Shown here one piece after another: positions 7,864 to 47,700 of a stretch of DNA of 64,000 bases. Source of the stretch: Trichoplax adhaerens (lineage: Eukaryota; Animalia; Placozoa); contig NW_002060956.1 in the NCBI RefSeq assembly GCF_000150275.1, positions 711,379-775,378 on the forward strand, written 5' to 3'. A model generated the notes under the pieces. It worked only from the letters and a program-made list of their open reading frames with translations. It ran no database searches and was not told the origin of the DNA. A program made the position numbers and the translations under genes. Every line of letters begins with the position of its first letter. Position 1 is the stretch's first letter.

Positions 7864-8227
7864 GCCCCCCTCCCCCCTCCCCCTGTGTAGTACTAAAACA
7901 AATGGACGCGTTTGACTGTATACTGTACACTACAGTAAAACACTTGTATAAGACCAGCGACTACTAGAAGTCCATCATGTACTGTGCAGCAAAATTGATT
8001 GCCAGCCATGCTAAAGTAAACAACTTAATCATTTGATCATAGCTAGAAACTATGGCAATATCGATCCAACAGCAAGATGTAATGGTTATGAAAAGTGATG
8101 ATTAAACTACAACATACGCACGTATACGAGTAGAATACTGGAAGACTATCCAAAAAAAAAAAGAGCTTATTGATCAATACCGGTTTCCCTTTAGTCGTAA
8201 AATTACACATCAACTAGGCTGGAAAGG

Positions 8228-9904
8228 ATGATTCAATCATGGGTTAAAGTCACTATAACATTATGCCTTTATGGCTTCTTTAAAGAGATGAAACCATCTG
8301 AGCCGTTTTTAACACCTTTTCTCAAAGGGTTGAGTAATAATTTAACTGAGAATGACTTAGAGCAAATTTATCCTGTTTGGACATACAGTTATCTAGGCAT
8401 GTTAGCCATCGCTCTGTTAGTCACCGATTTAGCTCGTTATAAACCGATTATTATCATTGAGGCGTTAGCTTACTTGGCTACTCGTATCATTTTGTTAGCT
8501 GGCCATAGTGTGCCTATAATGCAACTAATGCAGTTTGCTTATGGCATAGCGACCGCAACTGAAATTGCATACTATGCTTATATATATGCTGCAGTCTCAT
8601 CGCAACATTATCAAAAAGTAACCAGTTATACACGCATGGCTGTATTATGTGGTAGATCATCGGCAGGTTTTATTGGCCAACTATTAGTATCATTGCATGT
8701 AGCCAATCTTTACGCTCTCAATGTTATTGCTACCTGTAGCGTTTGTATTGCACTGGTATTAGCTGTATTACTTCCAAAGATTCATCCTAATGATTTGCAA
8801 TCAAACCAAGATCCACCCCTAATGGTATCCATTAATAATCGTGCCCTAGAAACTGAGAGTCGACATGATAATAGTCATCAACAACATCAAGATTCCAAAG
8901 TAGACAATCGTGTTAATACGGCGATGTTTTCACAAAGTAAGCCGCAAGATACTGACAACAACACTACTTCTTTAATCAAGGATAATAATGAAGATGAAAA
9001 CATACCTAGAGGATGGAAGCAGCAAATAACCCATTTTACTTGCACCTTGACCAATCAAATTGCCTATATCTACTCCAATCATTGCATATTGCGATGGTCT
9101 CTTTGGTGGGCATTAGCTACATGTGGTGAATTACTTGTAGGCAACTATGTAGAAAATTTATGGGACGTTATCTATCCCGCCCGCTATCATAATGAAGATG
9201 TCTATAATGGCCTAGTTTTGGCTGTTGCAACCTTGTTGGGAGCTGGTGCTGCACTAGCTTTAGCATATGTAAAATTTGATTGGGGCTTTTTCGGTGAGCT
9301 AACGGCTGGTATTGTATCTGCCATCGATGGCGTTTTACTATTAATTATGGCATTAACCAATCAAATTTGGCTATGCTATGGCTGCTATGTCATATTTCGT
9401 ACCTCGTATGCCTTATTAATTACGATCGCAAGGTAATTAAATTGATCTACATCTACTTTCTGCTTACCCTCAGCTATAAAGTTCAATAGCATACTAATGA
9501 CTAATTTAATTTATACTGTATTGAACTAATTGCATGATATCTGAAACATAATTAATTTTGATTCCATTATCTGATCTTCTTTTAGTCTACAGATTGTGAA
9601 CGAAATTAAAAGAAATTGCTATGGATTAGTCTTTGGTATAAATATGTTCCTAGCATTGAGTCTTCAAACTATACTCCAAGCGGTCATACAAGGTTACAAA
9701 GTACATGTCGTTCATCAATTTTATACGTATTCTGCCTACTTTGGTCTTCTTGGATTAGCGTTTACTGCTGTTGGAGCTTACAAAATTGGTAAGTTAGGAT
9801 GGAGAAAAAGCTGGCAATTCTCAAAGCTAAAGTATATTCAACGAGCGTCTGGCAATGAATCTGTTTCAACAATTGATAATAATAACGATATTGACAGAGT
9901 TTAA
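8228..9904 (+). CDS. SLC19A family thiamine transporter / reduced folate carrier; 2 exons (8228-9432, 9586-9904)
   Basis: Motifs LCLYGFFKEMKPSEPFLTP, YPVWTYSY, TDLARYKP, YGIATATEIAYYAYIY, RWSLWWALAT and YNGLV. The phase-2 GT-AG intron joins TIAS-LQIVNEIKRNCYGLVFGIN, the conserved TM11 region. Closer to SLC19A2/3, but orthology cannot be assigned here. Confidence 0.93.
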
Positions 9905-11375: not shown

Positions 11376-14300
11376 TCACATCAATCGATTAGGGATAGTA
11401 TTGCATTTGATTGAGATACTGTAAAAGGAAGTTTGAGGATGTATTAATAGACAATATTGCTGCAAGTCTGATCTAAATCTTAATATAAAATTATATAACA
11501 AATATTTTACACTACAGAATAACTGTATACATATTACTGTCATAATTGATCCATGATAATTGCAGATATAAAACAGACTTACTCCATGGTACCGATTTCG
11601 TCGTCATATTGCCTAACCTTCTCCGACAAAACACTGTATCTGCCAAATTGAATTTTTACCAATTGGAAGACTGCACTACCTGTAAATATTATTTAGATTA
11701 AAATAAGCTAATCCCATTGAATAGCAATTAATACAGTAGTTATCTATGATACTATATCCATTAAAAATTACTCAATTAGTAGATCATTCTTATTAATTTT
11801 ATTCTTTACCAAAATAATCCTTTTGGTGTGATTTACTATTGACACTGTGGATAGCTACAATCAATAACTGTTGTTTCAACGAGATTTGGCTTCCATAGAT
11901 AGGGACTTTTAGCTATTATCAAATAAGAAAATGTAAGCTATTAGGGTTGAAAAGCTACATTGGAGAAGCTCAAAAGTTCTTAATACAGCATCATGAATTC
12001 CATCTCAAAATGTACGGGTGTATTATGTCAGTAATTGGTACCGCTAGATCAAGATGAATATCGAAAAAGATTAAATTGGAGTCTATTATTATTTTTGATA
12101 GGCAAAACATGCTATACCCTTTCAATTCATCTTGTAATAATTATTTATCGCTTGATAAATTCTACTGAAATATCGATACCTGCTTAACAGGACTATTTTC
12201 ATGATTTGACCAATGGCATGAAACCCTATCATTAGTGATATGTGTTGCATTACCACTGTTGAAAGATTGATCTTGGCTTGTATTTGTTGACTCACTAAAA
12301 GTTACTTGACTATTCTCTATTAAAATGATTGAAATGTAGAAAAAAGCATATATTATTGCTACGACCAAACTCATTTGAATAACGATTAATGTGATTAGAA
12401 TGTGATATTTTAATTATATAGGATTAAATAAAAGAATTCGTTAAATTAATGTGCTATCTTAATTCTACTGAAGTAACGAACAGTAAATTAACAGAAATTG
12501 ATATAAATTTTGTTAATGAACTTCCATATTGTACTTTGAATATGGTCAAGGATAGTTATGGTTTATAATAATTTAATTGATAGACCTGTTAGATCTAATC
12601 AATTACCGTTACATCCTATAATATATGCCTTGATTTGGATCTTAATGTTTTTTTCTTGACGCTTAGTGCTAAACTGTTAGATTGATAAATTAAATTAAGA
12701 TAAAGAAATTGTGAAATGGTTTAAAAGATCATGAACTGTCAATTTACATGTATCGTACTTAAGTACGGATCCATATTGAAATAGTATAAGGCAGTTAATA
12801 TCACTGACTATTGTGCATATTTTTTGCTTAAGTTAATTAAAGTATAGAGTAATATAGTAATTACCGTAGTTTCGATTTCTGCAATTTCAAGATTTACATA
12901 AGCACGACTCTCTATAAAGATTACAATGGATTTTTAATCTGTTAAATTCAAGATCAATAATAATAATAATTGTGTAATCAGATACAGGTATTTATAATTT
13001 ATAGATTGACTAATTTTACTTTAGTAATGGATATACATGTAAAATTAGCTATATAGCTATGAATGTTATCGGTATTGGTACTGATTCAAGCCTAATTCTG
13101 GTATATTTCAACTTTGATGTAGGTATAAGATAGAAGTTGATCCTGGCATATTACCTTCATCTTTAGGCGTTTTAAGTAGGAATGACGAAAATACTGGCCG
13201 TCGATTAATACCATAACTAACATCTGGACAGCCTAATTTTTTAGACAGGAATTGGTGATCAAAATTGCTTTTTTTATCAACTTAAGTATCCAGATTGAAG
13301 CTGTTGTTAGACAAACCATAAATTGTATTGCTGATCGCACCATTCATGTAGCCTTTCTTATACAGAACTCTTCCACCATACCATGCCTCAGGAGTATTCT
13401 TTAAAAGTATGATTAAACCCATATGATAATTAATGAAGTACAAAAATGTAGGTATGTAATAATATGATAAGCGATGATACTGCTACATACAAATATCATA
13501 GTAATGAGTTGTTTCACGGTTAATGATCAAAGTTATTATCATAGTGAGTTATCAAAGTAATACTTCACTTACGAGCTTGTCTTTACTTTCGGCTGCAGTT
13601 GCAGGAAAATTACATTCAGCCTCATCTAAGGTTTAATAGCCAAAAGATCAGCGAGTATTTAAAAAACTTTATCATTACTACTAAAGTATACCTATAACGA
13701 TTAACCTACCGAAACTTGGTAATGCAACTGGCATTACTTTTTTAAGTTTATCTCTCATTTGCCAAACTCGGATAAGATGACTTAATTCTCTTGATGGATC
13801 AACTCCCTGTTTTAATCGGTTTCAAAGGCAATTAATATCATTCTTTAAGTTTATCTTTTCAGATTGCTACACATTAACAGCGTTATCGATCGACGTAGAT
13901 ATAGTAGTGATATATGTATAGGATTAGAAATGAACAGCCAGCTCGTTAATTACCATTTCAACTTTAGCACAATTTTGAGTAATATCTCCTAATATAAAGA
14001 TATGATGGAATTGTTGCGTTACATCATAAATAGGAATGCCATTACCATCAAACTTGATCTTTTTTAGTACATCCATTACGTCTTGTTTGACTCTGAATAG
14101 AAGTAAAATAAACGTTATTTCTATTATTTTATTGATGAGCCGCTGTTTTTTGATCAATTTATGTTCCTGAAAGCAGTATCATGCTGTTATCTAGGTATGA
14201 CTTAATTAGAACTGCAGTCCATATAGCTATAAAAATGGCAACATACGTACACGTCACTATGAATATGTTGCTTAGTGTCGCAAACTAGCTCTATGACAAG

Positions 14301-17300
14301 ACAACGAGAAGCTAAATCTACATATCTTTTCCCCAACCAACATATCAGGGTACTAAAAACTGTCTATGGAATTCTGTGGATACTTATCCCTAATTTTACA
14401 AATCCGTAGTTATCTGTACGCCTTTAACTTTGTGTTAAACACTAAACTTATAGAATAATATTTTTATGCAAAATACCGGATTTATGTACTTTTCTGCGAT
14501 AATTAGAAGTTACAATTAGCATCAATAGTACCTGTAAAATCAGGTACTAAATTTATATTTCAATGCCTAATTAATGCGGTAATAGCAAGTTTAAGATCAT
14601 AAGAATTGCAACAGCCACGCTTATGTATTTGTCGCCATTGCGTTGTACCACAAATACACAGAATCATCAAGTCATAATACACATTAACTGATAATTAGTC
14701 ACAATCACACATTACAGTACAAGATGTGTAAAGTATAAGCTATCTTGTAATCTACGTAAAATAAAGCTATGCCAATAAAACATCGCCTACTTCTCTACGG
14801 TGAAATAATACCGTAGCTGCCAGAAAAAAATTCACGTACTTTTGGTCTACATCAAAATTGACCTTCATCTGCAGATTAAGGAAGCAAATATGTCTGCTAA
14901 AGATGGTGAAAGATATTGCCGTTGCTAAAATTCAAACAATATAATTCAATGATATTTGTGTATAGTGAAAAATTGTACCTTTTTTGTATCTATACACGTG
15001 CTTAAACACAGTATATATGTCCGAATACATGTTTTATAATCGATCTTATTTAATTAATCAATCTCACCATCCGAACTTTCTGCTTTTCGTATATTATCGA
15101 TCTTCCTCAAAATATTTTTGCGAGCAAATATCATTAATTTTAAACTAGATGACGATAAAGCCGTAGAGGCGCTGCTACTTTCGCATAGCTATCAATTTAT
15201 TTAAAAAAGTCAAGAATACGTTATATACCTCAGGACTTTCGTAACGGTAAGCGATCAAACTATAAGTAGAGAGCCAAACTCTTCTTCACTATTGCTACAA
15301 GCCATAAAAATTTCTTACCTTTCCATACTCTTGGGAATCAGGTATCGCTTCAAGTAAGCGCTTTTTCCCTTGGACATCATTACAATTCTAAAGTAATTCA
15401 AGATAGGCATAACTGCGATTAATACTGCTCGTACAAGTATGTATAGATCACAGAGTTTCAATTATTGTTATGAATAGCAGTCAGTAAATATGTTAAATAA
15501 ATCAATACATAATTTTGGAAACTAGCTTAAAACTTAAACTATGATTTTCGTAATAGTTACGTTACTTGAGGTCTGAAAATAAAATAAATCTCTGGAATAT
15601 TTATAGTAAAGGGTTGTATATGTTTTATAAGTAATATCGAGTTATTCTATATACGTCGAAAATCTTACAATTTATCCAGCTCTGTAATGGTTATATAAAT
15701 ATGGGATCTCAAAAAGTTAATCATGAAAGCGAAAACGACTCACAAAACTACGCTAGTACAGGTAAATACCTTTCAATTCTGATTTGTCAACACTGCACCT
15801 AATCCGCTAGCTACTATAAAGCTTGGAAATTCTATTAACTATCAAATTAAGAAGAATTATGATGCTAGGGTATTAATGCTATAGCATAAGAGTGAATGTT
15901 ATTACTGACAAATCAAAATAAAAAAATCTGAAATTTATTAAATCAAACTAATACATCATTGTTGTGAATGGTATAAGTATGTGAACTAGATCTTGGCAGA
16001 GTTACTTACGACAGATGGTATAATTAAAATATCTATTAACAGTTCAAAAAATATATCAAAATAATAAGGAAAGAAAATAGTAATACAGTTATTGCCGCAG
16101 TGAAAACCCATCAAAATTGGACAGTTAAGTACTTTAAAACTTATTGAAAGGTTTCGTTGAAATATAACAAAATCAAAAACTAACACAATATAAAACGAAT
16201 ATTCAAAATAGACAACCATATTCATTTTACAGTACCTGTAAACCAATAACGTATATATCACTTGGTTTATAGCTGGATTCAATCGTGAGATCACTTCGTG
16301 GATGTCCTTGATTTGTTAGCCACTTTTCGATATTAACATTATTAAAGTTTACTCCCTCTAATGGAAACAAGAGGTAGTCGCTTTTATTAAGTAAGAGTAA
16401 CACTGAAATCATATCTAATCAATATACTATTTTTAGGAAATATCTAGGATGGCTAAAAGATTCAGATGGGCGTATAAGGTTTTAAATTAATATCAATTCT
16501 ATAGATTGAATTATTAATATTACTTCGTTATAAATATAATATATAAGCGCATATAATAATCTTCGAAAGAGCAATTTAATTGATCCACGTAAAAGGAGAG
16601 AATAACTTTAACTGACTTGAAGCGAAGGTCCCAATAAATATCGAAAGCTCATTCATTTTCGCAAGTGACCATTTATCGTATAATGTATTCCATACATTTG
16701 TAAAGACTTTATAATCCTGTATGGACAAGACAACATGGCCTACTTTAACTAGATGTAACGATTAAAGACTTCCATTATGGTTATGAAATAAAAAACTATT
16801 AGCATATACCTGAGTCTGCTTAAAGCAAATAGTCAACGTTATCATCGGGTGAATTTTGATTTGGCTCATGTTCACGTCAGGATTTTCAGTAATTTCTGAT
16901 ACTAAGATTAAAATCACTATCATTACATCAAGTTTAACTATATATTTTTAAATAGACGAAAAGTAACGAGTTTATTTATTATGGTATTTGACAAAAACTT
17001 ATCACTGACAATATTATCGTTAGATCTATTGATAATACAACATATTACCCTGGTCTAAAGAATAAACTTCTGTATTACGATATTGCGGCTGTTGATTTTC
17101 GTATAGGATTGCAACTAGAAAATATAATTAATATGCCAATAATATATCATAACATAGAAATTTAAGATTTTAATATTTTAAGATTAAGAGTAGAAATCCA
17201 AGAAAATTTAATGTAACTGTGGTTAATTTCCAAAGTAATTTTATAAGCTACTGTCGTTTGTTACCAGAAATTTGTATATAACTGATCTCTTTGGTATTTT

Positions 17301-20300
17301 ACGAAAATGCAGAAAATGTTTACAACCGCGTATATAACATTAAATGGGCGTTAGCTAGTTTAGATATAAAAGTTCGAGGACTTACGCTGCTCAAAATCAA
17401 GTATTATCTTTCCCGGATTAAATGTAGCATCATCATTATTAATATTCTTTTTAATACTAACCTATATTTAGATAGGTGTAAATTAAGATCTAGTTTAGAA
17501 TCTACTTTCATTGTAAGAAAGAATGAAAATCAACACCATTCTATTTTACCAGAGAATTACAATGTTAGCTTCATCGTAAAGTACCCGCATGCTAAGCATC
17601 GCTAATGTTACAGTCTATTTATAGCATTATATTTTTCTTATTTGACAAGACTTCTAGAAATTACTAACTAAGATATCTTATTATTCATTGGTAAATAGAA
17701 ATTATAAATGCCTACGTGAAAATTCCTTTTAGTAGGCGAAACTGATTGTTCAGGAGCCGAAAATATAGAAAGAATTTCGCTCATATATTTTTTTACTTCA
17801 ATGATTTTCTTCTCTAGACTAACTAGGGAAGCGGAAAGATCTTCACTCTTTCGCTTGTTATCTATATCCTCATATATATTATTGATCGTCTAAAATAACA
17901 ATAAAAATTGAATATTTTATAAATCATCGTAACTCCAAAAATATTCGTCGTACGCATACGCCGATGTATTTTCTTAATTTCGCTTATGATACGAAATGTG
18001 GAAATCGTCCTAAAATTATGAAACTATCTACATTGTAAATAATTTCATGTTATCATTAGTGCAATTATTGCAGTGATATTATATCTTTTACCTCATTAAT
18101 TCCTGTATTAGCTTGCTCCTAGAAGTAATAGAAATACGTAATAATAATTTTGTACATATCAGTATGTAAAGGCGATGTTAAGATTGCTATTCTATTAGGC
18201 TATAGAAGAAAATGCTAGTAATCTCACATCATACTCGAAAATAAATGTAATAGCAAATGATAGAGATCTCTAATAAATACTAATAGAAAGGATAAATTAA
18301 GTCCAAGGGAAAATTTCGCGCTAAATCTAAGAAAAAATTATAGATAAAGTTTATGGTACCCTATTCTCAGGATAATCTGACGCAAGCCGTTGATGAACCC
18401 GACAAACCTTCAGGAAAGCTTCCACTTCCAATGTAAATTTTGCAGTTGCTCTACAGAAAGATAAAATCAGCATATTAATATAAGCGTTAGCATTGAGGGC
18501 AGCTCTTACATGCTGTATGATATATCTAAAAATTACTAGCAGAAATAGATAGATTACCATTTATTATGTGCTAGTAATTTCTTCTTAACTATTTTGGAAA
18601 TGAGAATTCTCTATTATACCGTAAGTCGATATTCTATTTGATTTGATTTTGTTCCGCTATTATTGACATTTAATACTATAATCTAGCGATCATAGTTACC
18701 AGGATGCTCGTATAATATATCTTTAGTTAAGGCTTATACAGTAGATAATCTAAACTCTAAGATAGATTTTTTTGTAAATTGCTAACATTAGATGATAATT
18801 TAATATCGCGTAAACTATCCCTATTTGTAGATATTCCGTTTATAGTATTATCAATATGATTAGTTGGCTGACAACTCTCAGTCTATCATTTTACTTTTCG
18901 ATCTAAAATTAGATTTAAAAGTCCTTGCTTGATATGATTTCAATAAACTTTGAAGATAAATCTCCACATGCAACTAGTCAATGCAAAATAACAGTTAAAA
19001 TTTTTAGAATCTTACGCATAGCAGTTAGTTTTCTTCAACAACTTCTCAATTATACAGTTAGCATTGTCTTTCCAATTGCTTCTTTCAAAGTGGAGATCTC
19101 GTACATATTGCCTTGCTAACTCTATATCTGGACATGTGTTTGAAATTGTACCCGAAGGCTTAGATTGGCTATTTTGGGTGTTTAATGTCATGTTATCTGG
19201 CTTATAATTTTTATGTACATCTTCACATACTGGACTCATTTTTAAATACCCGAAATGACCAAAATTACTCTCATTGCTAGTAGGTCTATTTTGTCTTAAT
19301 ATAAAATCATGATCATTTGAAAAGTGATGGATAGATGATGTTGAAGAAGATGTATCTGCCGTTGATTTGGTTACTTCCTCATTCGAAAAGGGGCTGGTAA
19401 CTGGTTTTGTAGAGGTATAACTCATATTTTCAATTGAAGGTGATTTGCTCAGAAATGGCCGTCTATTAGAAGTTTGATTGGTAGATTCCTGACTGTTAGG
19501 AGTTAATGGAGGCCCATTACATCCTATTGGGCTGTTAATTGGTAACTGAAAGGCTTGACTTGTAGCATTGATTAGAATTGGTAGATCACTATTATTGATC
19601 TTATTAGCCTCTGGCTGAAAGTCGCTACTAAATGAAGAAGAATTTTCGTGTATTGGTGAGTAAAGACCAGCCCTATACGCAGAGTTAAAATTATTCGCTG
19701 AGTTGAAATCGCTAACAGGATACAGCGTTTTAAATGGTAGTTTATTGCTCTTGGTATAATGATTTGCAATCTCAGACAATGTTTGAAATTTCCTTTGAGT
19801 TGTTAAATCTTTGTCTTCGGTCTATTTAGAATAAATCGCAAAACTCAGTACAATAACATTGTAGTAATACAATCATTGAACTGAAAATATCAGATTATTT
19901 TTAATGTATATCGTACAAGACTTTAAAATATATTTTTATTCTGCGTATAAGCAGTATCACGTTATTTAGACATCCGTACCATTAAAAAATATATCGTACT
20001 GTACTTTATTTATGTATAGTTAGCAATTTAGGAGTATTTTAATTACTAAAAATCCCTATATCATGAAAGAGGTTCTAAACTTTGATATCATCATAACTTT
20101 CAGTATTTAAAGCTAATACAATGCTGTCAATATTTTGTAGATACATCGTTCATCATTTTTGCAGTTAATTAATTAACTAATATATATATCGTTTACCCTA
20201 AGCAACTACATCACAAAACGACAATTTACATTTTAGTACTTATCTGGCAAGGTATACGTACGAGTTATATAATCAGCAAGACTATGGCCAGTAAAAGATA

Positions 20301-20815
20301 CTTACAAGCTCCGGAACTATATAATGATCATTATTTCGTATGATTCGGTAATCGTAAATGGTCCCTTCCCAACTATAATATTAATTGCAAGACAAATTAA
20401 GGCATAAAGTGAGTAGAAAAGAAAGAATTTAATTTATACACAATCAAAACTCGAATATCAGTTACAATTAGAAATTGCATATTAATTTAGGAAATGCAAG
20501 AAATTAGGTGGCTAATATCGTATTATTAACTTAAGGAGTGATGACAATGTTAAAGATCTTGTACAAGAGGGCATTACAAGTCGATTCCTTATAGGACTTT
20601 GACATGTGAGAACTGGAGTAAAGTACAATAGTAAGAGAAATGATTCCATCCTATTCAACTTACTAAACATTTATTACAATAAAGTTCATAGACGTTACAC
20701 TATATCTGAATAAAAATGCTCCGTCTCTGCCATCATTTTCCAATCGAGTACGGGCGTCTACTGCAGTAATATCACGAAAGAAAGCAGGATAACGTAAAAG
20801 GTCTTCATCGCACAT
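11376..20815 (-). CDS. SHIP-like paralogue A: SH2, linker, PH-like region, catalytically degenerate inositol 5-phosphatase domain, C2 (candidate pseudophosphatase)
   Basis: ATG at 20815: MCDEDLLRYPAFFRDITAVDARTRLENDGRDGAFLFRYS (SH2). Later exons give LSIFIGTFAS, SDIYVIGLQ, ICFLNLQM, DVTQQFHHIFILGDITQN, NTPEAWYGGRVLYK and RRPVFSSF, then C2 exons. Phosphatase and C2 exon boundaries parallel paralogues B and C. No stops in the exons I traced. Confidence 0.85.
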
Positions 20816-25866: not shown

Positions 25867-28800
25867 CTACTTTCTAAACTGAGATTCTTTTACTGTATTA
25901 CTGCCGTAAAATGGAGCATGAAAGGTATCAAATGCAGGATCTTTAGGGACTTTTTGCTTCCTGTCTAGAATTTGTATTCTTTACGAAGTGAAAACTAAAA
26001 CTAAAGTAAAGCAAAGAAGTATATTACCACATTAAAATCTAACCTAGGCAATTGAATTAAATTTGACATTTTTAAAGCTATAATGCGTGTTGACGATGCA
26101 GACATACTCTATTTTTCCGATAAATTTTCCATAATATGATAGATCAACCGCTGGTGTCCTTTTATTATTTTGGTTGATGATTAAATTGAGAGGTATGCAA
26201 CCAGCACCTAGAGCAATTGAATTAGAATTTTATAAATTCATATTGCTTTACAAACCTTACTATTGTAACATTGTAAATTCTTTTACCTTTATAATGTTTG
26301 GTGTCGCTCGTTTTCAATATAGCTAGAAGAGTTTGACCGTTTAGGTATTTTAGATCTGAATCTTTGAAGTACTCTTCCTATGATTAATACGCACGAGTAA
26401 GTTTGAAAATGTTAAAATCGCTTAGATTTAACTTTCTTATAGACTGTATACTGTCCATTCTGAAGCATTAATATTTTAATTTATTGCCAATAAGAGAGTA
26501 AAAGACCTGAGAGAATTCACGAATTGTCCACTCTGGGCACTGATGACGATCTTCAAATTTTTGTCCAAATCTTGCAAACTGCTGTTCACGAACATTGAGA
26601 TTATCAGACCAATAGCTTTTGTTTGGGCCGCTGATAATTGGTGCTAACAAAGAAATAAAGTAACTTATATTTCTAATTAAACTGTACGATCAATAAGATA
26701 CTTTTTTTAGTGTTCGTAGCCGATAAAGTTGAAATTAGATTGTATCTGCACTTATGAAAGTATAGACGACTCATTAAAATACATGATTTTCATTCTGGTA
26801 CGTGATAGCTAGAACTATATTGGAATTATAATTTTTTGAGTGAATTTCATTTTTATCAAAAAGTTGCATGTACAAATATGTTAATAAATAGAATCAGGTC
26901 AAAACTTTGCCCAGTAAGTGTGTTTAATGAGTAAACGTCATAACAGCATTTGATGGCGATAACAAGAAGATGTTAGATCTGTATCAGATATCATAAATAT
27001 TATGAAAATGGAGATGCGACTAAAAATGGAATTAAGAGCTTACAATTTAAGCAATTGGAATGAAATTCCAAAATCAAGCTTTCCGTAATTTCTTGATGCG
27101 ATTTTAGCTAAAACATGAATCGAATATGAGGATCAGTTGAGTATCATTTAATGTTATAACTACAGTATTTACTTATATGATTTTAACGTTATGAAGCACT
27201 AACTGCCTACATATATGTAAAACGATTTAGAGCTCGTTTTTAAATTTATGACTAAGAAAATAAAATAATAATTGCCATGGTTTCAGTATAGCTATTTTAT
27301 TTGTATAATCTATTTATTCCTAAATGGCTATATTTGCTACGCTGAATTTATTTTGGTATATGAATGATAAGTACCGTCCGTATTCATACTAAAACACCAT
27401 CAACTTATTCAATGGTATTATCATAGATCTAAAATAAAATTTACAATCGAGGCCAGTATTCATTCGAAAGGTGTACAGCATTAACCATAAATATAGAAGA
27501 TGCTTGTAGTTAAGGTCAGTTCACTAATGCTAAGATCAACATAAACTTACTAAAACATGGACACTTATAACTTTTATATAGGCTAAGTGATCTTTTGGTT
27601 TCCAATCTTTAGGGCGTTGTGCTAGAGTAGGTTAAAAAGACATTAATATTACAGCAACATGTAACATAAAATATAAAGAGACAGTGTATAAGCATATAGG
27701 CACTTTACTATCAAGACAGTTAATAGTCCGTAGGGTACCGAAAAAAGTAAATTAATTGCTGATTTCTTTGTTTCAGTACTTATAAATGAAGACTGCATTA
27801 CTTTACAGCTACATGACTAGATTTATATTATGAACCTACATTTTCTAATTGAAAGCCATACTTCAATATTGTTATGATAGATGTCTGCTTCAAATAAGCC
27901 ATAAACCGGCAGATGATCGCTTGATTTAACATCCATCGCTGAGCCTGATCAAAATCAAAGAGTAGTACTACTTAAAATGCGAAATTAAATAGGCGAAAGA
28001 TTCACAAGTTACTTGCGATCAATTTAATGATATACTATATTGGACTGATGTGCTACAGCATAATAAAGGCCAATTTTTGGAATTTTTCTTCGTCAATTTT
28101 ATCTGGCAGAAGCAATTATGAATTACATAAAGTACGGTACTTGATGTACAATTTTAGAGGCAGATTAAGACCGAACCTATCTTGGTAGTAGAGGTGTAAG
28201 CTTATGATCCTATAAATGGATTTAATAGCGTTGTGTAGTAACAGTAGTCTCTAATAGATGGTGCAACTGTCCATTTCATTGATTTTCCCGATTGATGTTG
28301 CGTGAGAATTTGCGAATAGTATTTAAGCTTAATATGCAAAGTAACAAAAGGATTTCGGTAATTTATCGTATACGAGTAAGAAGTTAGACGGTTTATTATA
28401 GTATGCCTATCGCGGGATTCAAGTGAAAAGTTTATAGTATAGACACTACAGAGTACAAATCTTGATATGCAGTTTAAGCTTAAAGGAGACCAAAAAACAG
28501 TTCTACATATACTTTTATCTCAAGATTATATACTTATTAACGATAAGAATAAAGTGGTGATTTTATACTTAAGGTTCTTCTAACCGCTTACCATAGCATA
28601 CAAAAGGTAGCATTAACTATATAATATCGCCTAAATAACACCGATATATTATGCTTATGTGATATTGTAGAAATTGATTAATAGCAATATCGTTACTTGC
28701 CATAAGCTAAACACTTTACTTTCTGCTGTGGATAAGACTTCCATAAAATTCGATCGCACCAAGAATGAGCGTTAACGATGAGCTAATATTGTATCGGATC

Positions 28801-31800
28801 AAAATCCAGTATTATTAAATAAGAAATATGGCTATAATCAAGAATAGCTATCAATGTTAATATGTTGCCTTATCATTGCATATATATTGTATATTTAAGG
28901 AAATAAAGACAAGTCAAGAAAGATAATATCCGTCATCAAATATTTCATTCACTCACCTTATTTTTACCTTTATTTTTGTAACACATGTAACGGTTGTTTG
29001 AACCAACAACCAAGCGATAGGTAGGTGCGAAATCAATTTGCTTTTCCTCTATCAATCACGAATAAAAGGGAATATTGTATTTAAAAATTGGTGAATGCTA
29101 ATATAACGGTAAAAAAAAGAAATAGTTTGATTTGGAAGCTTAAAGATACTAAAAAGCGACAACTAATTTTAGGTACAACATCTATCAATAATATTTATAC
29201 TCTGATACAGAGGATTAATGGGTCTTTGTGCTATGTAAAATAAAAAAAATTTAAATTGAATAAATCAACATACCCCAATCAAAAAAGATTATTCCATCGC
29301 TTTTCTGTTGATTAAGTTGGTCCTTATTCAGAAGGCCTGTAAATTGTTTATTGATCACTTTCTCATTGACTTCCTACACGTATAGAGTAATTTTATCATT
29401 ATTATTACGGTTCAATGTCGATAATTATACGTGTTGTACCGTATTTGATCAATTATCATTATGATTCATATTAATTAAGACATGCAGCTACATCAGTAAT
29501 GGTAAAAAGATTGCTATCATATCCTGCGACCTTATCTAGAATTTATATTAGCATCAGTATTACAGTAGTAATAATAGCTTTCCGTAAATTCTATTTTTTC
29601 TTATAATAATCAGCCAATTGATTAACTAAAATTAATGGTAATGTTGCAAAATGGAATTGTTTTCATTCATTTTATAGCTTTACAACCCTGTATTTTCTTA
29701 TCTTATTATGCTAGAAATGGATAGTCTACAAGGTTAACCATAATACCTTCAATATGATTTAAACTTACGCTTATATTCGCATCAACACGGTAATTTAAAT
29801 CTCCAAACCAAAATATATGATGAAATTGATGAGTGACATCTTGTAGCTTCGATTGAAAATTTCCTAGGCGCAAATTTTGGGCAATTCGTTGAACTTCATC
29901 ATTTCGCCTATCATTGAAGTGTTAGTCATAGTTGATAAATCTGTTAAAGAAGTTCAGTAAGTTGATTTTCGAAGTTTTCAGGCTTTTGCTAGATATTCGT
30001 ATATCTTACTTTACTAGGTTTTCTGCTCTTGCAGCCAAGTGACTATTAATGAAACAAAAATGGGTTTGATGGAGCTGAAAGGAAATGGCTACTGCACCTT
30101 TGTTGCCTAAAGAAAATATAAGAAATTATTGTTTCACAAAGAATAAGGTTTAGGTGAATTATATCGCACAGATCCAAGGTAGTCAAGGCGAAATAATAGC
30201 ATGTAATAATTTACCAAATCTTGGAACTCCAGGTATATTACCAGTTCTAACAAAGTCATGTTTGATATTAGTGATCACTTTATGGTAATCAAGGCTACAG
30301 AATACTGCAATCTTCATTTGAACTAAGCCTAGTGCATCCAGCTATAAAAATAGAAACAGAGATAATTCTTTAATTTACCGCAGTAGGTTATGTTTTTACA
30401 GTCTGTTCCGTTACTTCGAATATTTTTTAGCACTATTTTATTCAGTTAAAAAGTCAAATGAATGTATCCTAATAATTAGACACGATATATTTCTGAAATT
30501 AGCTGTAATAATGAAAATTCTAATTTATAATATTAGCAAACTGATTTAATATATTTTTAACTATTAAACAAGTCTAGTTTAACAAATAAATACTTTATCT
30601 TGCATTACTATAAATACTGTATTATTTACTGAGTTTAATATGCATTATATATTATTTAAGGAATTATGCTGCTTTTGTCATCAACAAAAATTCTATTGTA
30701 GTACACTAAATTTTAGCTTGATGCATACGATTAGCTATGATATATTTAGGTAATAAGTATTTTATCTTATACAAGCTACATCGCCGGTTCCGTGAATGAA
30801 TCATTGATCCCCTTAAATTACGTAGCTTAATTTTATATTGATCAATGCTTAAATTAATATTATTGGCAGGTATATTTTATATCATAAAGTTTGGCTGAGT
30901 AAAATAAGGTTATATACGACGCAAGTTAATATTCTTTAAGACTGTGTGTTCTCATGATATCGAATGCGCATGCAATATTTACACTACTAGACATACACAC
31001 TTGTACGGTATAGTTTTCTCTAGCTGAAAGAGCTTAATATCGTAGCGGCGTCATGTTAAATTTTCGTCATCAATCAACCTCGGGCTTTAAGTTCAGTAAT
31101 TTTGCAATGCTATTAATAATGTTATACTGTTATTACTGTACCTTTACACTACGCTACTGTAGATGCTTCTTGCTGCCATACTGAATGAAATAATGAACTG
31201 TTTTGGCAATTTGAAATAACCAGATACGTGCAGTATATTGCAAAATACTCAACATACTATATTTAAGAAAGGAATTTTCATCAGAAATTACTTTTATAAA
31301 CTGAACATTAGAATAAAAATTGTGAAAGAGTAAGGATTCCTCTATTTCAGTGTATCGGCATACAGCTTACGAAAGATCCTAAGTAATATACCTACCTTCA
31401 CGTAAAATTTTGCAGTCATTTGGTTTAATAAATTTTTCACATGATTAGTCCAGGTTGTAAGATTACTCATTCCACTCTCCTGAGTAATACAAATTACAAA
31501 TTAATTCATAATTTAATCTAATGTTTTAAAATCTTAATGAAATGTTAATGCAAACTTATCCTATATATTACTCTTTATGTATTCGTACCTGAGTACCAAT
31601 AACGTAAATATCATACCCTTCCTGTAAAGATGAAGATATATTGGTGGATCCTTGGCATGTTAGCCAAGGTCGAATATTTGGAGCTTTAGAGAGATTTCCA
31701 CCTAACGTTGTTATTTAATACGATTCAAATAAAAGCGAGAATTCCTATTAATAATCGCTTATTTCTATTACTTTTATCTTTATCATATCTAAAGCCTTAC

Positions 31801-34800
31801 TTATCATCATTAATTTAAATTATTATATACGCTACCCATATTCCATGTGCCAACAAATATTTTGACTTTTGCTTTAGGCGTCAAATCACTGCTGAGACTA
31901 TCTAAAATACCGTAGAATTTGTCCAGATCCTGATATCGTAATAAATCGTATACAAAAGAATGATCAATCAATATGTTAGAGATTTATTATAGCAGACAAT
32001 CTCCTCTAAATCAGCTAAAATCTATTTCTATCTTGATTTTTACCAAATGGTTAATATTAACAAATACAGCCATTAATGTACGAGAAGAGCTAATATCATA
32101 TTATCACTACATGTTCAATTCATTAATTTTACATTTTTGTCATGGAATTCGATGATTTTTGGCCAATTTTCATGATGGTTTGCATAATTAATAAGAATAC
32201 TTTTTGCACTCTCGTCTTTCTTTACAGTTCGAACTAAAATGAAATTAGTAGCAATAGTTCAGAAAAAATGCTACTAATATTGGATTACACTGCAAAAATT
32301 GGTAACAATCCTCTAATAAGTATTATGATCTGTAATAGAAGTAAATAATTATGAGATTTTTATTTATACATATTGTCAGAATATCTAGCTTCTAATAATT
32401 AAATTTATTAATTATTGGTTGCAAACGTTATAAGTTAAGAGAAGATAGAGACATCAATACTCTGCTAAATTTCTTATATCTTCCTGTAAACTTAAAGGAA
32501 TCTACTGTATTATCATTTTAATTTATAAAATACAACTGGTTGTCATATATAAAGTCATAGGCTACAGAGATATTATACCTGATCACTCTATCTGAGAATC
32601 TTATTTCTAATAATAAACTTAAAGAAATCAATTATGCTTATTGCTGTAACTTATGAAATATATCCGACTATTACTTAGAAATTTATAAATTAGAAAAATG
32701 CTTACTAGTGATGTTGATTATGTCTTAACTAACTGACTTAAACGGGAACTTGAAGCTATCCATTATTATAGTCTCCAGGGCATTATTATAAATACTCAAA
32801 AGTGCACTGGTTTATTGATATATCTAATAATATATTATTCGAGCTATTAACTTAAGATTTACGAAAATTCCAAGACATTTAGAAATTACTTTCTGCAGTT
32901 GAAATATCTTCCATCAAGTTGCTACTTTGATGTTTGTCTTGAAAGCTAATGATTGCTGTTTCTAAGTTAGATAAAATAACCATTGATACATAAATGGTAA
33001 TATCAGTTTACAACATTACGGAATATAACAATCTAATTTGTTCTACCTTTCCCTAAATTCAACTTTATCAAGACATCATTTCGTATGTTTTTGCTAAGTA
33101 GCAAAGTTGCATTAGCCTAAAAAAACTTAGTCCATGAGAACACTAATTTAAAGCTATCGTATATTCAATAAATCAAGTTAAATGAACAGTTTTTGGTTAT
33201 GATAATGATAAAGCTACTAAACCTCAAAGTTTGGTTGAGGTTCTTGATCCGAGAACAGCGTAGATTCATTGAATGCGAACATATTTTGACCTTCATGAGA
33301 AGTATCTGGCTCTGACATGGTTTGTATTGGATTCGTATTACGCTCTAACGTAGAAAATTGAAGCTTGTCGTAGTTTTCATTATCTATGTCTTCATCGTCA
33401 GAATTACGATCTGTTCTTTCGGAAATATCAACAAATTCGTAAGATTCTGCATGATTAAATTCGTTGATATTTGTAGCGGCTTTAACTTCCATCATTTTAT
33501 AAAACTAGAAATGGATAAAATTTATAACATATCAAATATCATCAACTATGCTTTAAATCACAATTTTATTTAGAATTTTTATTTGATTACGGCTAATAAT
33601 CTTTGAAAGCATTATAAATATAAATCACTGTCTATATCATAAGTGAAAGGTTTATGTATATTAAAATTAATGGAAAGACCAATTTGATATGTGATTCATT
33701 CGATCACAACTATAAAATTTTTAAGCTTAAAGTATAAAACTAATATTGCTTAATCGTAGAGAGAGTCTATACATGCAGTAAAAAATAACGATGAAAGCAT
33801 AAATTATAACAGAAATTATACAGGAAAATATATTTTCTTTTAAGATTTGACGTGACAATTTTAAAAATTATATAAAGCTAATATCAGTACATTCTCGCAG
33901 AAGAGCAGACATTTATTAAAGTGGGATAATTTACGCAATATTTATCAGTAATTGTATACAGTCTTCGCTATTTACTACAATGATTTAATATTATATAGCC
34001 TGTTTATGGTATATGATGTATCTAATTTTACAATCCTGTTATCTGCATGTGTTCTCACTCTAAAATTATAAATACTGATGATTTCTGCCTCAGATTTGTT
34101 TTGTTGCACTTGTTGGTGTTAGTATCTACTCACGTTACTTCACGACAGCTTACACGCTGATCTACTAGAAACTACCACACTGAACCTAGTTATTCTCTAC
34201 AATAAATATCTCTTTTTCTAATAATCCCCGTATCATTATTGTGAAATGCCTAAGGAGTCCACGTTCGCAGACTCTTTGAACCCTCCATCGCAGTAATCAT
34301 TGCTACGAATTTTATCTGTCTTAGTGATTTAATTACATAAATTGGTAAAGATTGAATATACAGTATATCAACCATCATACGTACTTTCTTATGGATTTCT
34401 GTTATGAGATTTTTGCAGACCTCAAACTGGCATACCATGTCACCTAATGTCATTTGACGGTTTTTCCATTCATCAGTACGGGTAAGAAACTTGCAGGGAA
34501 TTTCCGATGGCTATAATCATAAGTACGTATACACTTAAAATAAAAGCTCTCATGATATTGATAGATAAAGCCAAAATTTTTATTAAAGCTTGCGATAGAG
34601 AAATTTGGACATGGTTAGTTATTTCGATAAAATTATAAACTAGTACTCCGTTATTCATCATAAATATTAATTATTTTATTCTGTTTTGAGTACAGTATGA
34701 TATTAATTATTTTTAATCATTAATTTAAAAATTCCTTTCATTCTTACTTCTGTTAACCGCATAAGTACTTGCTCTAGATTCTTCAGATAGTTATAATATC

Positions 34801-41704: not shown

Positions 41705-44700
41705 TTATCGAGTGATATAACCACTAATTCTGTAATAAATGAAGATAAAGTTAAGGCGCGTACACCAATTCAAAGTAAGAATTGCATTAAATACGATAGT
41801 AACTATAGTTAAAACTAGTGCCCAATAATAAACTTACTCGAGCTTGCCAATCTCTTCCCCATAGAGTGTCAAACTTGCTACATAGCTTTTGCTTTCATGT
41901 GTCATGAAAGTTGTTAATGGAACGTGACAAGCGCCTATACAGAAAATAAATCATCTAATTTAGGGAATATGTAGATTATCATTAAGAATTTTTATGAGGT
42001 ACATCTGTATGCAACCATATGGTGCTAGTACAAAATGTGCTATAAAGAGGTATACTTGTAGAGCACTAGGGAAATAACAAATAACCAAGACTTTATAATA
42101 TCGCAAAGCACATTATATAATAAAAGTATAAATACTAAAGTTAATTTGTATGCGTATATAAGATTATCGCTACGTACCCAAATATTCTCCATTATCACTT
42201 GTTTTTAAAGATACTAAAAGCGATTGGCGTTCAAGATATTCATCAAAAGGGTATTTTGCTTTCATCTAGATAGTAAAGGATAGCAACTAAATATTTCAAC
42301 TACAAGAAATGATGTTAGATAAACATTATAATAAAACCATTATCATCAATACCCTGTTAGGAAGATCAGAAGATTCCCACAGCGGACAAAGATGGATTTG
42401 ATTTGATGGGATTGATGAATGGGGTATTTGTGAAGTAATTGAATTTATTTGCCATCCTGAGGTATTAGGTGCGCTTTCTACGGGATCTGCATGCGAATAA
42501 AAGCGTTTCCGAATCGCAAGATTTACAATTAACAAAGTCCTTAACGAGAATTAGATGAAATAAAATCGTAGATATTGCATTATTTAACATATTTCAGAAA
42601 TGTGGTTTTTATAATCGATCAGATTATATTTACCTTCTAAACAGGACGAAACAAATTCTAAAGTGAAATGAGCAACATAGCGTTTAACTGAACGGATCTG
42701 TAAGTAAATAATATCTTATTTTAATATCATATACCGTACAATTGCACAGGATCTTACTAAAATGAATTAAAGTGAAAATATTTACTTAAAGATGAGACGT
42801 TAGTAAAAACAAATAATTAAGCTTTCAAAGTTATTAAAAGTAATAATTCGGTTGAATTGCTAATCAATCAAGATTTGACTTTAATTTTTGAAGTCAGATA
42901 AGCACGATAGTTAAAGTTTAATAGATTGATGATACTGAATATTGATGGGACGATAATCTCAGCAATGTAAGGCATTGAGGATCAGAACAATAGACGACGT
43001 ACCGCAGCATGAGCATTCAATATTGCAATATACGCGGGCATCTTATGCGGATTATAATTGAGCTTTTTCACTTAAACGTGCGAGTTTTATAGTCAAAATT
43101 AGTAGTTAAAACAATTTTAAAAAAGTATATATATACACATAGAAATTTTTTTGTGATAATTTGTAACCTAGCAAACGTTCCAAATTTTTATCCAGTATTT
43201 ACTAAAAATGCACATATTATTAATAACAATTACACACACAGTATGATAATAAGTTTCCGTAAACTTACTAATATCGACCAAACGGTTACTATTAACATCA
43301 GTTTGGTACAATCCAAAAACAGGCAAATGATCGCTTGTCAGTATATCATGAACGGATCCTACACAAATTTAAATTACGGATAATTATAGATGCTACGATA
43401 TCTGATTGATGCTGTTGCACAAGTAAGCGTATTTCGTCTTCTAGCTAAAGTAGAAATATTTATAATTCACTCAATCACTTAATTTTCTCATACAGAAAAT
43501 GTACGATGATAAGAATAGGCAAAATTAGCTTTATTGACTCCACTCAGTACCTTTATAGGTAGGTAGGAAAATCAAACAAGCTTGCATATCAGCATTTGTG
43601 AGAACAAAAGTAACAGTGACTTGATGCATCGTTTTATAACTATGACTAAATTATTCAAAATTCTTTGCTATAACAAAATCTAAGTGCTTTACTGCACGTA
43701 TATTGTGGTAGCAGTCTTCGGTAAGGTATTACAATTTGCCTGCATATGTAGTTCATGTATACGTACTAATTTTTACTATGGACTAAGAAAGAAACTGCAT
43801 CTAGTTTTGAGACAACTTTATAATGTCACGAAAGTACTAATAGCAAATCATACCGTATGATATACATTCCATAGCAAGACTTGGATACGACTTCCATAAG
43901 ATACGATCACACCAAGAAGGTGTATTAATTGCGTTCTAAAAATTATATCTAAGATTAGATGTAGACTATTTATAAACTGAAAAGAAAAGTAAAACATAAC
44001 ATTAAGTTAATCATGCTTACTCTGCCTCCTGGTCTCCTCTTGAAACAATCATATGCATCATCTTTACCAACCACTAAGCGATAAGTTGGGGGAAAATTCA
44101 GTTCTCTTTCACCTGCATAATCAGTTATTTAGTTAATAATAAATAATCGCATAATCATATCCGATATCAAAACAGGTAACATTAGGTGATCGTTAATATT
44201 GTAACGTCAGTTCAGGTACCAATTTTAATAGACGAAATCATTTATTGTATGTTTTATCCCACGACAACTTATCATCAAATTGAAATGTCTAATTTTGTGA
44301 TTAATCTAAAGCTATAGTCAGCTCGTGACATACGCCAATCAGTAAATACACTGCCATTCAACTTCTCTTGATGCAATTGGTCTACTTGAAATAATTTGGC
44401 AAAATTTCTACAGGAAATACCATTATTGGCTTCCTGAAATGATAAAAAGTTAAAAGCGCTACCTTAAGTTAACCTGTCGTAAGATATGCTAAAATTTTAA
44501 AGACAGTTTATCTAGTAGTGAATCAGTTTACAAATGAAAAAGGGTGCTGAATTAAATATAACTTTTCATGTTAATGAATTGCACAATATCAATCAACCAA
44601 TTGATTGATCACAGATGCAGGGAACAAAAATTTAAAGGCTTGAGATATTTCCACTAGAGCTGAAACAAATATAACTGTATTCTTAAAGGCTACTAAGGAA

Positions 44701-47700
44701 GGAAATTACCGGAACAGCCATCTCTAATCTATAATTCAAATCGCCAAACCAAAAGATATGATGAAACTGATGTGTAACGTCCGTTATATTTGGATTTAGG
44801 TCTCCCAAGCATAAATTACGGGCAATGGCTTGAACGTTATCTTGTCGCCTATAGAATGCCAAAACTTGTGTAACTTTACTTCAATTATAATAATAAAGCC
44901 TTACCATCGGTTAAATTAATGTAAAAGTAATCTCTAACATTTTATTACACATCAATTGAAGTTAGTGTCATGAGATTGATTTTTACCTTTTCTTTTCTTC
45001 AACTCTCGCAGCTAAATGACTATTGATGAAACAAAAATTTGTATCGTCTAATCGAAATGATACGGCTACACCGCCTTTATTACCTACAAATATAGATTTA
45101 AAATACTTTCAAAGATTAATTCTCGATTATTTACAGATTGGTGCTGAGTACATAGCAGTAAGGGATCTTAAACGCTATTTATACATCAGAAATGTCATTT
45201 GTAAATCGTTACTGAAATTTTACCGAGTGTGCCTCCTGCTCCAGTCCTAACTTGAGCGGATTTAACGTCAGTAATTCGGAAAGCAACTTCTGGCCGGCAT
45301 AATATTACAATCCTAATTCCCCATAAGCTATTCACTTGTACCTACGTAATTGATTAATTAATATCACGATATAAACTTCCTAAATCAATATTTATTATTA
45401 ATTAAATTAGTTAATTTAACTACTTAAATTAATTATATAAAATATTAGGATCAAAAGATCGTCCTACCATACTATAATCCAAATTAGTAATTTGATACAA
45501 TGAATTTTTCAATTTGTCAACCCACTCTGATTCGGGGATTGATGAACCCTCCTTTGTTTAAGATTAATAGTTGAGAAGGCTAACTTTAACGATAGATATA
45601 TGGATCGTGATATCTAATGCATATATCACCTAACTAATTACTGATAGGAGCCATTTAGATAGTTTTTACTTTATTACTATACATCGATAGTGTACAGTAT
45701 ATCTACCTGTGTACCGAAAGCATAGATATCAAATGCTATATCAGCTTTCTTGTTCAGTTTTATGCCTTGGCCGTGACACAGCGGCCATGATTGTATATCA
45801 TCTGGTGGACGTTTACCACCTATGATATGGCATTCATAAAATATCCATTAGTATCAATTACCGACTTAAAAATGTGCAAAATAGAATTTAGATCTGTTTG
45901 CAGATACCCATATTCCATGTACCAACAAAGATATTGATTTTATCGCTGTGTTTAGATGTATCTGGGTCTTTTAAACTCTCTACGCCAGAGAAAAACTGTT
46001 GCGCTGACTATTAACATAAACCAATACAAATGCAAAGCGTTATAATTTCAGAGGGTTAAGATTGCTGCTTTCTATAATTACTTGTGAGTTTATTTGCAGA
46101 ATCAAACTTACGCGCGCATCTGGAAATCGAAAAATATGCTGCCGGCTAAATTTGCCTTTACCGAAGATTAATTTCAATTTCTGAAAGTCTTCCGGATCTT
46201 TAATAACGCGATAAACTAGAAAATTGATTGATTTATTACTGAAAATCTTAACAGTTCATTCGCCAGCGAGAAGATTGACGTAGAAGCGATTGCATCATGA
46301 GAATCGTTAATTAGAATAGTATTACTTTCTGAGGGGAGGGTTTTAGAAATAACCGTTCCTTCTTCCGAACTAAGCAAAATTTCCAGTTGTCCTACAGACA
46401 GAATTTACGAAAAATTTCAATAACGTGATTGACTACAAAAATAAGTTATTTGGCAGCAAATATTTATGCACGTTAAATGTTACTAGCGTATAATCCAAAG
46501 GGATTAGTAATTGCAAAATTGTTAAAATGTAAATATCAAGAGTATAAAACATACTCTTGCTAAAATCTATTTTAATTGCGGCTTCGGTGGTTTTTCTCTT
46601 TTCGGATAGGACAATTACCTAAAATGGAAGTTCGATAGAGATACAATACATTAAGATCAATCACTAAGAACTGTCTTTTAGAAAGCACACTGATTATATT
46701 GTTGATAATAAATTAAACGACTACGCTGTCAATATTTGGATAAAATGTCAAGTTTAATGCTCCTTTGCATCTCACTTTGTAAGATCGATTCGGCAAACGA
46801 ACTTCCCGAGGTTCATCTGCATCCGGAGATTGTCTTGTAGCAGGATCATGATCATCATCTGAAGTCCTTGCTGGGTGAATATCGTCACTTTCGTTACTAG
46901 ATGTATGATCAGTTATCATTGCAGAATCTCCACTATTTGAACCAGATGATGAGGGATTATCAGCATCAACGTCAGCTTTCAGTAGTTTAAAGAACTAGGT
47001 TTGAAATTTAAAACAAATATTTTCATTTTCATCTTAAAGTATGTATGAGAAGAAACGGAACGGAGTGGTATGATTTAATGACAATTGCTTCTTTAAAGTG
47101 AATCTCTCTTCGATATCAGTGCGTCACTATTTCAGTCGGTTTATTGATTCATTATACATGTGCATTTTTACCAAGTACGGCGATAAATAAATTTAATATT
47201 CTTATTTTACCTGGTCATTAACGTTTTGTAATAATTGCCGGCAAGAAGACAACTTATTGACTACCGCATCAACAGTCAGTTCCATGGGTGAATCATCGTT
47301 ATCAGGTCGTATTCGATAAAGGAAGTCCAGTGAATCCGGAGCGGGCTAGATTGTATTGTGGAATATAGTATACAACAGTAAGTCATGGATTAATTTAAAA
47401 TTATAAAAATTACTCGAGTTTAAAGTAATCCTAACGAATCAATATGTAAAAAATATTATACTCTAGAATTTACACTACCAGCTCTCAATGGTATAAAAAT
47501 TCTTCCTAATTCACCTCGTCATGATTGCTACTTAAGATTAGCAACTCTATTAGCTTTTGAGCATAAAGTGTCTGTATTATACGCTTACAATAGCTACAGG
47601 GTCTAGCTTTATTCCATATGCTGTACATAAGTGTAAGCTACATAATTCTGCATAAAGTATTTATGGTTTTAATTGCAGCGCAAGTATACTGTATATGGCA

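Follow-up and report, generated by a model that had tools for sequence, protein, structure and literature searches.

A SHIP-type paralogue of Trichoplax adhaerens that probably acts without catalysis

We analyzed a 64,000-nucleotide (nt) stretch of the Trichoplax adhaerens genome (contig NW_002060956.1, positions 711,379 to 775,378; here, the window), AT-rich eukaryotic DNA with a G+C content of ~30%. Within it lie three SHIP-type genes, called A, B, and C below, all on the minus strand and arranged head to tail. The three share an architecture in which an SH2 exon comes first and ten short exons (a1 to a10), together encoding an inositol 5-phosphatase domain, come after it. B and C keep the canonical 5-phosphatase residues, with the motifs GTWNMG, GTQ (an intron falls directly after it), and SDHLP; in gene A, most of the corresponding residues are replaced or deleted, in a frame that is spliced, free of stops, and under recent constraint. 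We consider it likely that A is a pseudoenzyme that acts without catalysis, as an SH2-recruited adaptor and/or a competitor of B and C.

Splicing and active-site residues of gene A

The RNA evidence consists of Logan contigs from four runs of four studies (X5, X6, X7, and X15), placed on positions 12901-18900 of the window; contigs, not raw reads, were used. Sixteen minus-strand exons between 13155 and 18450 are joined in this RNA, by 15 joints that are identical in four of four runs, and all 15 introns are GT..AG once a junction ambiguity of 1 to 2 bases is resolved. A first-pass annotation, made from the sequence letters alone, had predicted a spliced transcript in which A is joined in frame at the same positions as B and C. 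The RNA bears this out: the same joints recur in each of the four studies, and they cover all ten domain exons, whose positions and phases are shared with the siblings. Loose contig ends add two more joints, from 18450 to an exon at 19016 and from 13155 to an exon at 12911, both across GT-AG introns. Summed contig word depth over the exons is ~15 to 20 times that of the low-depth contigs over the introns, the pattern of mostly spliced RNA, although contig depth is a poor measure of expression.

The 16 exons join into a stop-free frame of 490 codons, compared with 65 and 30 stops in the two alternative frames; on base composition alone, such an outcome has a chance of 1e-17. With the 5' exons, the open frame extends to 848 codons from an ATG at 20815, two of the 5' joints being predicted, and it contains none of the stops or frameshifts that the first-pass annotation had considered as signs against a functional gene. 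That annotation placed the element at 13155-16717. Both limits coincide with real exon ends (the low end of a10 at 13155 and the high end of a1 at 16716/16717), but the gene is much larger. Its parts are as follows, with a slash marking an exon boundary within a motif.

Gene A: 20815 down to at least 12865, minus strand; at least 20 exons
Exon 1: 20664..20815, minus strand; carries the ATG (20815) and, with GAFLFR, the N-terminal part of the SH2 domain; phase-2 end with a GTAAGT donor; outside the RNA contigs
Exon 2: 20306..20372, minus strand; middle strands of the SH2 domain (YWEGTIYDYRIIRNNDHYIVPEL), GTAAGT donor; predicted joints
Exon 3: 19016..19821, minus strand; end of the SH2 domain and a serine/threonine/asparagine (S/T/N)-rich linker of ~230 residues; 269 codons, stop-free
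Exon 4: 18360..18450, minus strand; RNA joints
Exon 5: 18092..18118, minus strand; 27-nt micro-exon; RNA joints
Exon 6: 17716..17889, minus strand; RNA joints; synonymous variant at 17833
Exon 7: 17386..17461, minus strand; RNA joints
Exon 8: 17049..17114, minus strand; RNA joints
Exon 9: 16810..16901, minus strand; RNA joints
Exon a1: 16617..16716, minus strand; RNA joints; SIFIGTFAS/K in place of GTWNM/G
Exon a2: 16236..16357, minus strand; RNA joints; DIYVIGLQ/ in place of DIYxxGTQ/; variants at 16292 (Asp to Asn) and 16311 (synonymous)
Exon a3: 15319..15387, minus strand; RNA joints; first residue Asn, against the metal-binding Glu of B and C
Exon a4: 15068..15188, minus strand; RNA joints; core strand LKLMIFARK kept, loop preceding GNKG replaced
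Exon a5: 14840..14924, minus strand; RNA joints; 12 nt shorter than in B and C, GNKG absent, CFLNLQM for CFINSHL
Exon a6: 13954..14092, minus strand; RNA joints; DVTQQFHHIFILGDITQN, with the D607 equivalent kept and N609 changed to Thr; synonymous variant at 14005
Exon a7: 13710..13806, minus strand; RNA joints
Exon a8: 13573..13625, minus strand; RNA joints; FPATAA for FPPTYR; 39 nt shorter than in B and C
Exon a9: 13317..13398, minus strand; RNA joints; NTPEAWYGGRVLYK as the altered motif, with the N684 and R691 equivalents kept and D690 changed to Gly
Exon a10: 13155..13232, minus strand; RNA joints; INRRPVFSSF for TSDHLPVF; synonymous variant at 13186
Next exon: 12865..12911, minus strand; SRAYVNLEIAEIETT; RNA-supported start, predicted donor at 12865

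In the 5-phosphatase superfamily, the Asn of GTWN and the Glu after GTQ are metal ligands. The exons of gene C match the human SHIP2 and SHIP1 structures at the expected places (a2 at SHIP1 23-58, a5 at SHIP2 chain 124-149, and a8 at SHIP2 chain 236-264), and SHIP2 numbering can therefore be transferred; with an offset of 416, chain 3nr8_B yields the published positions of D607, Y661, and H718. In SHIP2, D607 is the catalytic base and H718 contacts the 5-phosphate, N540/K541 contact the 1-phosphate (P1), Y661 and N684 contact the 4-phosphate (P4), and R682 contacts the 3-phosphate (P3) (PMC5550278, PMC7610569). H718, N540/K541, and Y661 are needed, as judged by mutagenesis or structure (PMC5550278, PMC7610569). 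At these and neighboring positions, gene A reads as follows.

Asn of GTWN: Ala in A
Glu after GTQ: Asn in A
N540/K541 (GNKG): deleted in A, exon a5 being 12 nt shorter
His of NSHL: Gln in A
N609: Thr in A
Y661 and R662: Ala and Ala in A
Stretch directly after PTYR, ahead of loop L4: 13 residues absent in A, exon a8 being 39 nt shorter
D690: Gly in A
D717: Asn in A
H718: Arg in A
Kept in A: D607, the Asn of NSHL, the N684 equivalent, and R691

The catalytic and metal-binding set (the GTWN Asn, the QE Glu, the NSHL His, D607/N609, and D717/H718) is thus reduced to D607. Among the substrate contacts, both the P1 pair and the P4 contact Y661 are lost, and the other P4 contact, N684, is kept. A also retains the fold's hydrophobic strands (SIFIGT, DIYVIG, LKLMIF, AISF..CF.N, HHIF.LGD, RVLYK, and PVF). 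Every motif that the first-pass annotation quoted is reproduced (SIFIGTFAS/K; DIYVIGLQ/N; ATAISF..CFLNLQM without GNKG; HHIFILGDITQN; FPATAA; AWYGGRVLYK; and NRRPVFSSF), the structural strands it described as retained (SIFIGT, DIYVIG, HHIF, RVLYK, and PVF) lie in the joined frame, and the SH2 arginine it read in FLFR is found within GAFLFR in exon 1. Its statement that essentially every catalytic motif is lost needs a small correction: most residues are replaced or deleted, but D607, the Asn of NSHL, and the N684 and R691 equivalents remain. That A is enzymatically dead, as the annotation proposed, is supported at the sequence level, where the lost residues mapped via SHIP2 include H718, N540/K541, and Y661.

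One alternative is that A is still an enzyme, either with residual 5-phosphatase activity from an unusual active site or with a new hydrolytic activity on another substrate. The four retained residues just listed are consistent with this, as is the constraint on the domain described below. Against it stand substitutions at the metal-binding Glu, the GTWN Asn, the NSHL His, D717, H718, and the P4 contact Y661, together with deletion of the P1 contacts; in SHIP2, a single change (D607A or N684A) is enough to leave activity undetectable (PMC5550278). We regard a surviving enzyme as very unlikely.

Descent and retention of gene A

The models of B and C were built from homology, with GT-AG candidates chosen by phase; RNA support applies to gene A only.

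Gene B, whole gene: ~38535 to ~26000, minus strand; homology model
Gene B, phosphatase-domain exons a1-a10: 27840..31929, minus strand; all canonical motifs; homology model and PF22669 six-frame matches
Gene C, whole gene: ~51268 to ~41800, minus strand; homology model
Gene C, phosphatase-domain exons a1-a10: 43290..46007, minus strand; all canonical motifs; homology model and PF22669 matches; exons match human SHIP2/SHIP1 structures

Over the phosphatase domain, A is 24.5% identical to B and 25.4% identical to C, and B and C are 45% identical to each other. A keeps 50 of the 147 columns in which B and C agree and is the most diverged and fastest-evolving of the three copies. The domain of A nevertheless matches those of B (4e-16) and C (8e-15) by blastp over nearly its full length, with a Smith-Waterman z of 24 against shuffles. 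For each of the ten phosphatase-domain exons, GT-AG candidates in B and C match A in both start phase and end phase (one donor in B is GC), and two introns are common to all three genes, namely, an unusual one that splits the codon after GTWNM (GTFAS in A) and a phase-0 intron between GTQ and E. The FLxR arginine is found in each SH2 exon, within GAFLFR (A), GAFVIR (B), or GAFLIR (C). Exon a6 of A, which is single-copy in the genome (105.6-Mb assembly, 1414 contigs, as for all genome-wide scans here), aligns weakly to SHIP2 chain 158-193 (E = 0.7), in register with the match of C at 2.6e-10. Taken together, these comparisons securely place A as a true, though very diverged, SHIP paralogue.

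A search of the PDB gave no SHIP match for exon a2 of A and no match at all for exon a1 of C. Exon-length differences in multiples of three were dropped as evidence because the boundaries in B and C had been chosen by phase. The GC donor belongs to the model of exon a9 in gene B, which requires GCAAGT at 28700-28701; A and C have GT at this place.

The dead motifs could also be an artifact of exon choice, with an alternative isoform carrying exons that have the canonical motifs. Such an isoform might escape notice in contigs, which drop rare variants. The same joints are dominant in four studies, however, and a tblastn search with stop-free segments of C against the whole window found no second copy of the canonical motifs near A, only exon a6, the single-copy exon noted above. 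We find this explanation scarcely credible.

How long A could have stayed open by chance was gauged by simulating neutral drift under intron-like base frequencies, with the domain coding sequence of B or C standing in for the ancestor, down to identities of 45, 34, or 25%. In-frame stops averaged 14 to 18 over the 330-codon domain, each run having at least 4, and none of the 1000 runs was stop-free, which argues that the divergence of A accumulated under selection for an open frame. Present-day variation agrees in direction. Among the four runs there are five exonic variants, four synonymous and one changing Asp to Asn; the introns within 13155-18450 hold 19 single-base differences and all 3 indels, no exonic indel being seen. 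The ratio of nonsynonymous to synonymous polymorphism (pN/pS) is 0.065 (Fisher P = 0.007, rising to 0.03 on the assumption that 30% of neutral changes are synonymous), and the density of nonsynonymous variants is lower than the density of variants in introns (P = 0.03). These data support recent constraint on amino acid changes in A, which is not a decaying pseudogene. The first-pass description of A as retained is upheld by the same spliced RNA, open frame, preponderance of synonymous variants (4 of 5), and absence of stop-free neutral runs.

At 16292 and 16311, the window differs from the three runs labeled "organism A" and equals the run labeled "organism B," which has differences of its own at 13186 and 17833; these runs represent very close lineages.

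A gene in early decay, working until recently and still transcribed, might not yet carry a disabling mutation. The loss of the catalytic motifs fits such a pseudogene, as do the fast evolution of A and the small share of B-C columns it keeps. The long linker exon would fit as well: exon 3, with its 269 codons, has no relative among 1.84 billion representative proteins, and not even a self match was returned, so gene A is absent from public protein sets in its modeled form. On the other side stand at least 848 codons and 17 RNA-supported joints with no stop, frameshift, or broken splice site, the 4:1 ratio of synonymous to nonsynonymous variants, and an excess of spliced over unspliced RNA in four studies; neutral drift, moreover, cannot explain the divergence of A in the simulation. 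Early decay is, in our estimation, quite unlikely.

Proposed role and the ends of gene A

The reading that we favor is that A is a pseudoenzyme. Recruitment to phosphotyrosine sites would fall to its SH2 domain, in which the FLxR arginine is present, and scaffolding to the dead phosphatase fold, the long S/T/N-rich linker, and probably a C2-like module. A would occupy docking sites and leave the 5-phosphate of phosphatidylinositol 3,4,5-trisphosphate [PI(3,4,5)P3] in place, and since A would not remove this phosphate, it could be in competition with B and C wherever their sites coincide. It would then serve as an adaptor and/or a competitor of its active siblings. Both roles, adaptor and competitor, remain plausible hypotheses, and mammalian SHIP1 is known to have adaptor functions that are independent of its phosphatase (PMC11311582).

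A role as a lipid sensor, which the first-pass annotation had offered beside these two, fared less well. As a noncatalytic sensor of lipids or head groups, A would bind PI(3,4,5)P3 or PI(3,4)P2 in its dead pocket, either masking the lipid or reading it. Substrate binding by dead lipid phosphatases has precedents in other families, and A may keep a C2-like module (12865-12911 and the candidate exon at 11583-11679). Most of the known P1 and P4 contacts are lost, however (N540/K541 deleted and Y661/R662 replaced, though the N684 equivalent is kept), which makes a sensor less likely, and 13 residues are absent after the PTYR motif, ahead of the L4 loop (PMC5550278, PMC7610569). We judge this role unlikely.

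A more specific form of the pseudoenzyme reading is that A is a conserved placozoan dead subunit, recruited through SH2 to the phosphotyrosine sites of the active SHIP paralogues, where it would tune or block the removal of PI(3,4,5)P3. This is possible but rather doubtful. If true, it would provide a pair of dead and active phosphoinositide phosphatases within the 5-phosphatase family, evolved independently of the myotubularin pairs.

Several points weigh against A as an intact, dead member of the family. Pfam, run on ten pieces of A, returned only a sub-threshold SH2 match and no 5-phosphatase call on any exon; given this lack of recognition and the loops lost with the shorter exons a5 and a8, the domain of A may no longer be a compact fold of the 5-phosphatase type. 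The retained D607 and N684 equivalents make residual or altered activity formally possible. The selection test is a small sample, five variants among very close strains. Finally, gene A may end in either of two ways, with a C2 domain after the phosphatase domain or with a stop at 12811, which the frame reaches if the donor at 12865 is unused.

At the 5' end, the phase-2 intron after exon 1 has the same position as in exon 1 of B (38375-38535). Pfam scores the stop-free exon-1 piece as SH2 at E = 0.003, below the curated cutoff because the piece is only part of the domain. Exon 2 is the sole listed candidate that starts in phase 2 and combines a consensus GTAAGT donor with a phase-0 end; this end joins the best acceptor of the long exon (19821) in frame, and the joined frame is open. 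A module of SH2 length, ~110 residues, is obtained over exons 1 to 3 with the two predicted 5' joints. The 3' joint of exon 3, to 18450, has RNA support, with loose ends of four of four runs matching 19016-19045 and a GT-AG intron between. The modeled part of gene A contains no NPxY motif.

At the 3' end, loose ends of all four runs match 12882-12911, across the GT-AG intron 12912-13154, and one X15 contig extends 458 nt past the joint at 13155. By eye, SRAYVNLEIAEIETT resembles the first C2 strand of B (AYIKVISVH), of C (AYIAILNAH), and of human SHIP2. The downstream pieces of A did not rise above noise in Smith-Waterman comparisons with the C2 exons of B and C. Pfam on the candidate C2 and SH2 pieces returned nothing for A and weak PF24147 matches for C, and a six-frame genome search with PF24147 found no match, its control being silent as well. 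Chaining exons below 12865 was tried and rejected: the sole phase-0 acceptor for the LILFQYGS piece leaves an intron of 38 nt.

Two similar stop-free pieces on the minus strand, at 12737-12826 and 12457-12555 (LFQYGSVLKY and FKVQYGSSLTKF), resemble the second SHIP C2 strand and may be a duplicated exon; no in-frame join with a plausible intron was found for either. Further down, the minus-strand candidate exon at 11583-11679 has a good acceptor and a GTAAGT donor and encodes ...YDDEIGTM. Its likeness to the C2 exons of B (26107-26211) and C (41837-41950) is by eye and does not exceed noise.

Within two introns of gene A, at 15842-15863 and 17901-17918, one contig each in X15 and X6 touches both places, with 40 foreign letters between the touches and ~184 and ~248 loose letters outside. 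These contigs may come from an unrelated transcript that matches by chance, or from another RNA.

Across the genome, the six-frame scan with PF22669 matches B, C, and three further inositol 5-phosphatase loci (coordinates in assembly G000), and gives no match to gene A.

Contig C1391: 366921-367839; inositol 5-phosphatase locus
Contig C1404: 335970-337349; inositol 5-phosphatase locus
Contig C1413: 2948594-2949364; inositol 5-phosphatase locus

The window also holds tandem repeats at 7446-7860 (103 bp x4), 24768-25149 (166 bp x2.3), 52356-53160 (135 bp x6), 59184-59354 (30 bp x5.7), and 63526-64000 (232 bp x2.1). The 166-bp array separates A from B, and the 135-bp array sits directly upstream of C. 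On the plus strand, open frames of 411 codons (8201-9433) and 109 codons (9575-9901) converge on the 3' side of gene A and resemble, by eye, a multi-pass membrane transporter.

Comparison with known systems

Kinases, tyrosine phosphatases, and myotubularins all have well-known pseudoenzymes. A search of the accessible literature found no description of a SHIP or inositol 5-phosphatase pseudoenzyme, in line with the first-pass annotation, whose author knew of no described SHIP pseudoenzyme.

The closest relatives by descent are SHIP1 and SHIP2 (INPP5D and INPPL1). Like them, A runs from an SH2 domain through a linker to a 5-phosphatase fold, probably followed by a C2-like strand, and like them it has the FLxR arginine; it is homologous to the domains of B and C, whose exons match human SHIP2 and SHIP1 best. 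Unlike them, it has had its catalytic, metal-binding, and substrate-binding residues mostly replaced or deleted, lacks NPxY in its modeled part, carries a linker of ~230 S/T/N-rich residues without relatives, and has a domain that Pfam does not detect. We therefore file A as a dead SHIP paralogue rather than a SHIP enzyme, since its descent and architecture are those of SHIP and the catalytic features of the family fail.

Mammalian SHIP1 offers a functional parallel in that it, too, acts through SH2 and other interaction regions without catalysis (PMC11311582). There, one protein is both enzyme and scaffold, whereas A is a separate gene that apparently has no catalysis. How much of SHIP biology is due to scaffolding and how much to catalysis is an open practical question (PMC11311582). 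A selected SHIP paralogue without catalysis, in an animal with a small signaling repertoire, would separate the two roles genetically, and A would indicate which surfaces of the fold matter without an active site, albeit as a lineage-restricted gene of a non-model animal.

The nearest functional analogues of A would be the dead myotubularin-related proteins (MTMR5 and MTMR9-13), the classic lipid pseudophosphatases, which pair with active members of their family. Both are phosphoinositide-phosphatase paralogues that have lost catalytic residues and are retained beside active paralogues. They differ in fold, that of the myotubularins being of the protein tyrosine phosphatase (PTP) type with a catalytic Cys and that of A of the Mg-dependent exo/endonuclease type.

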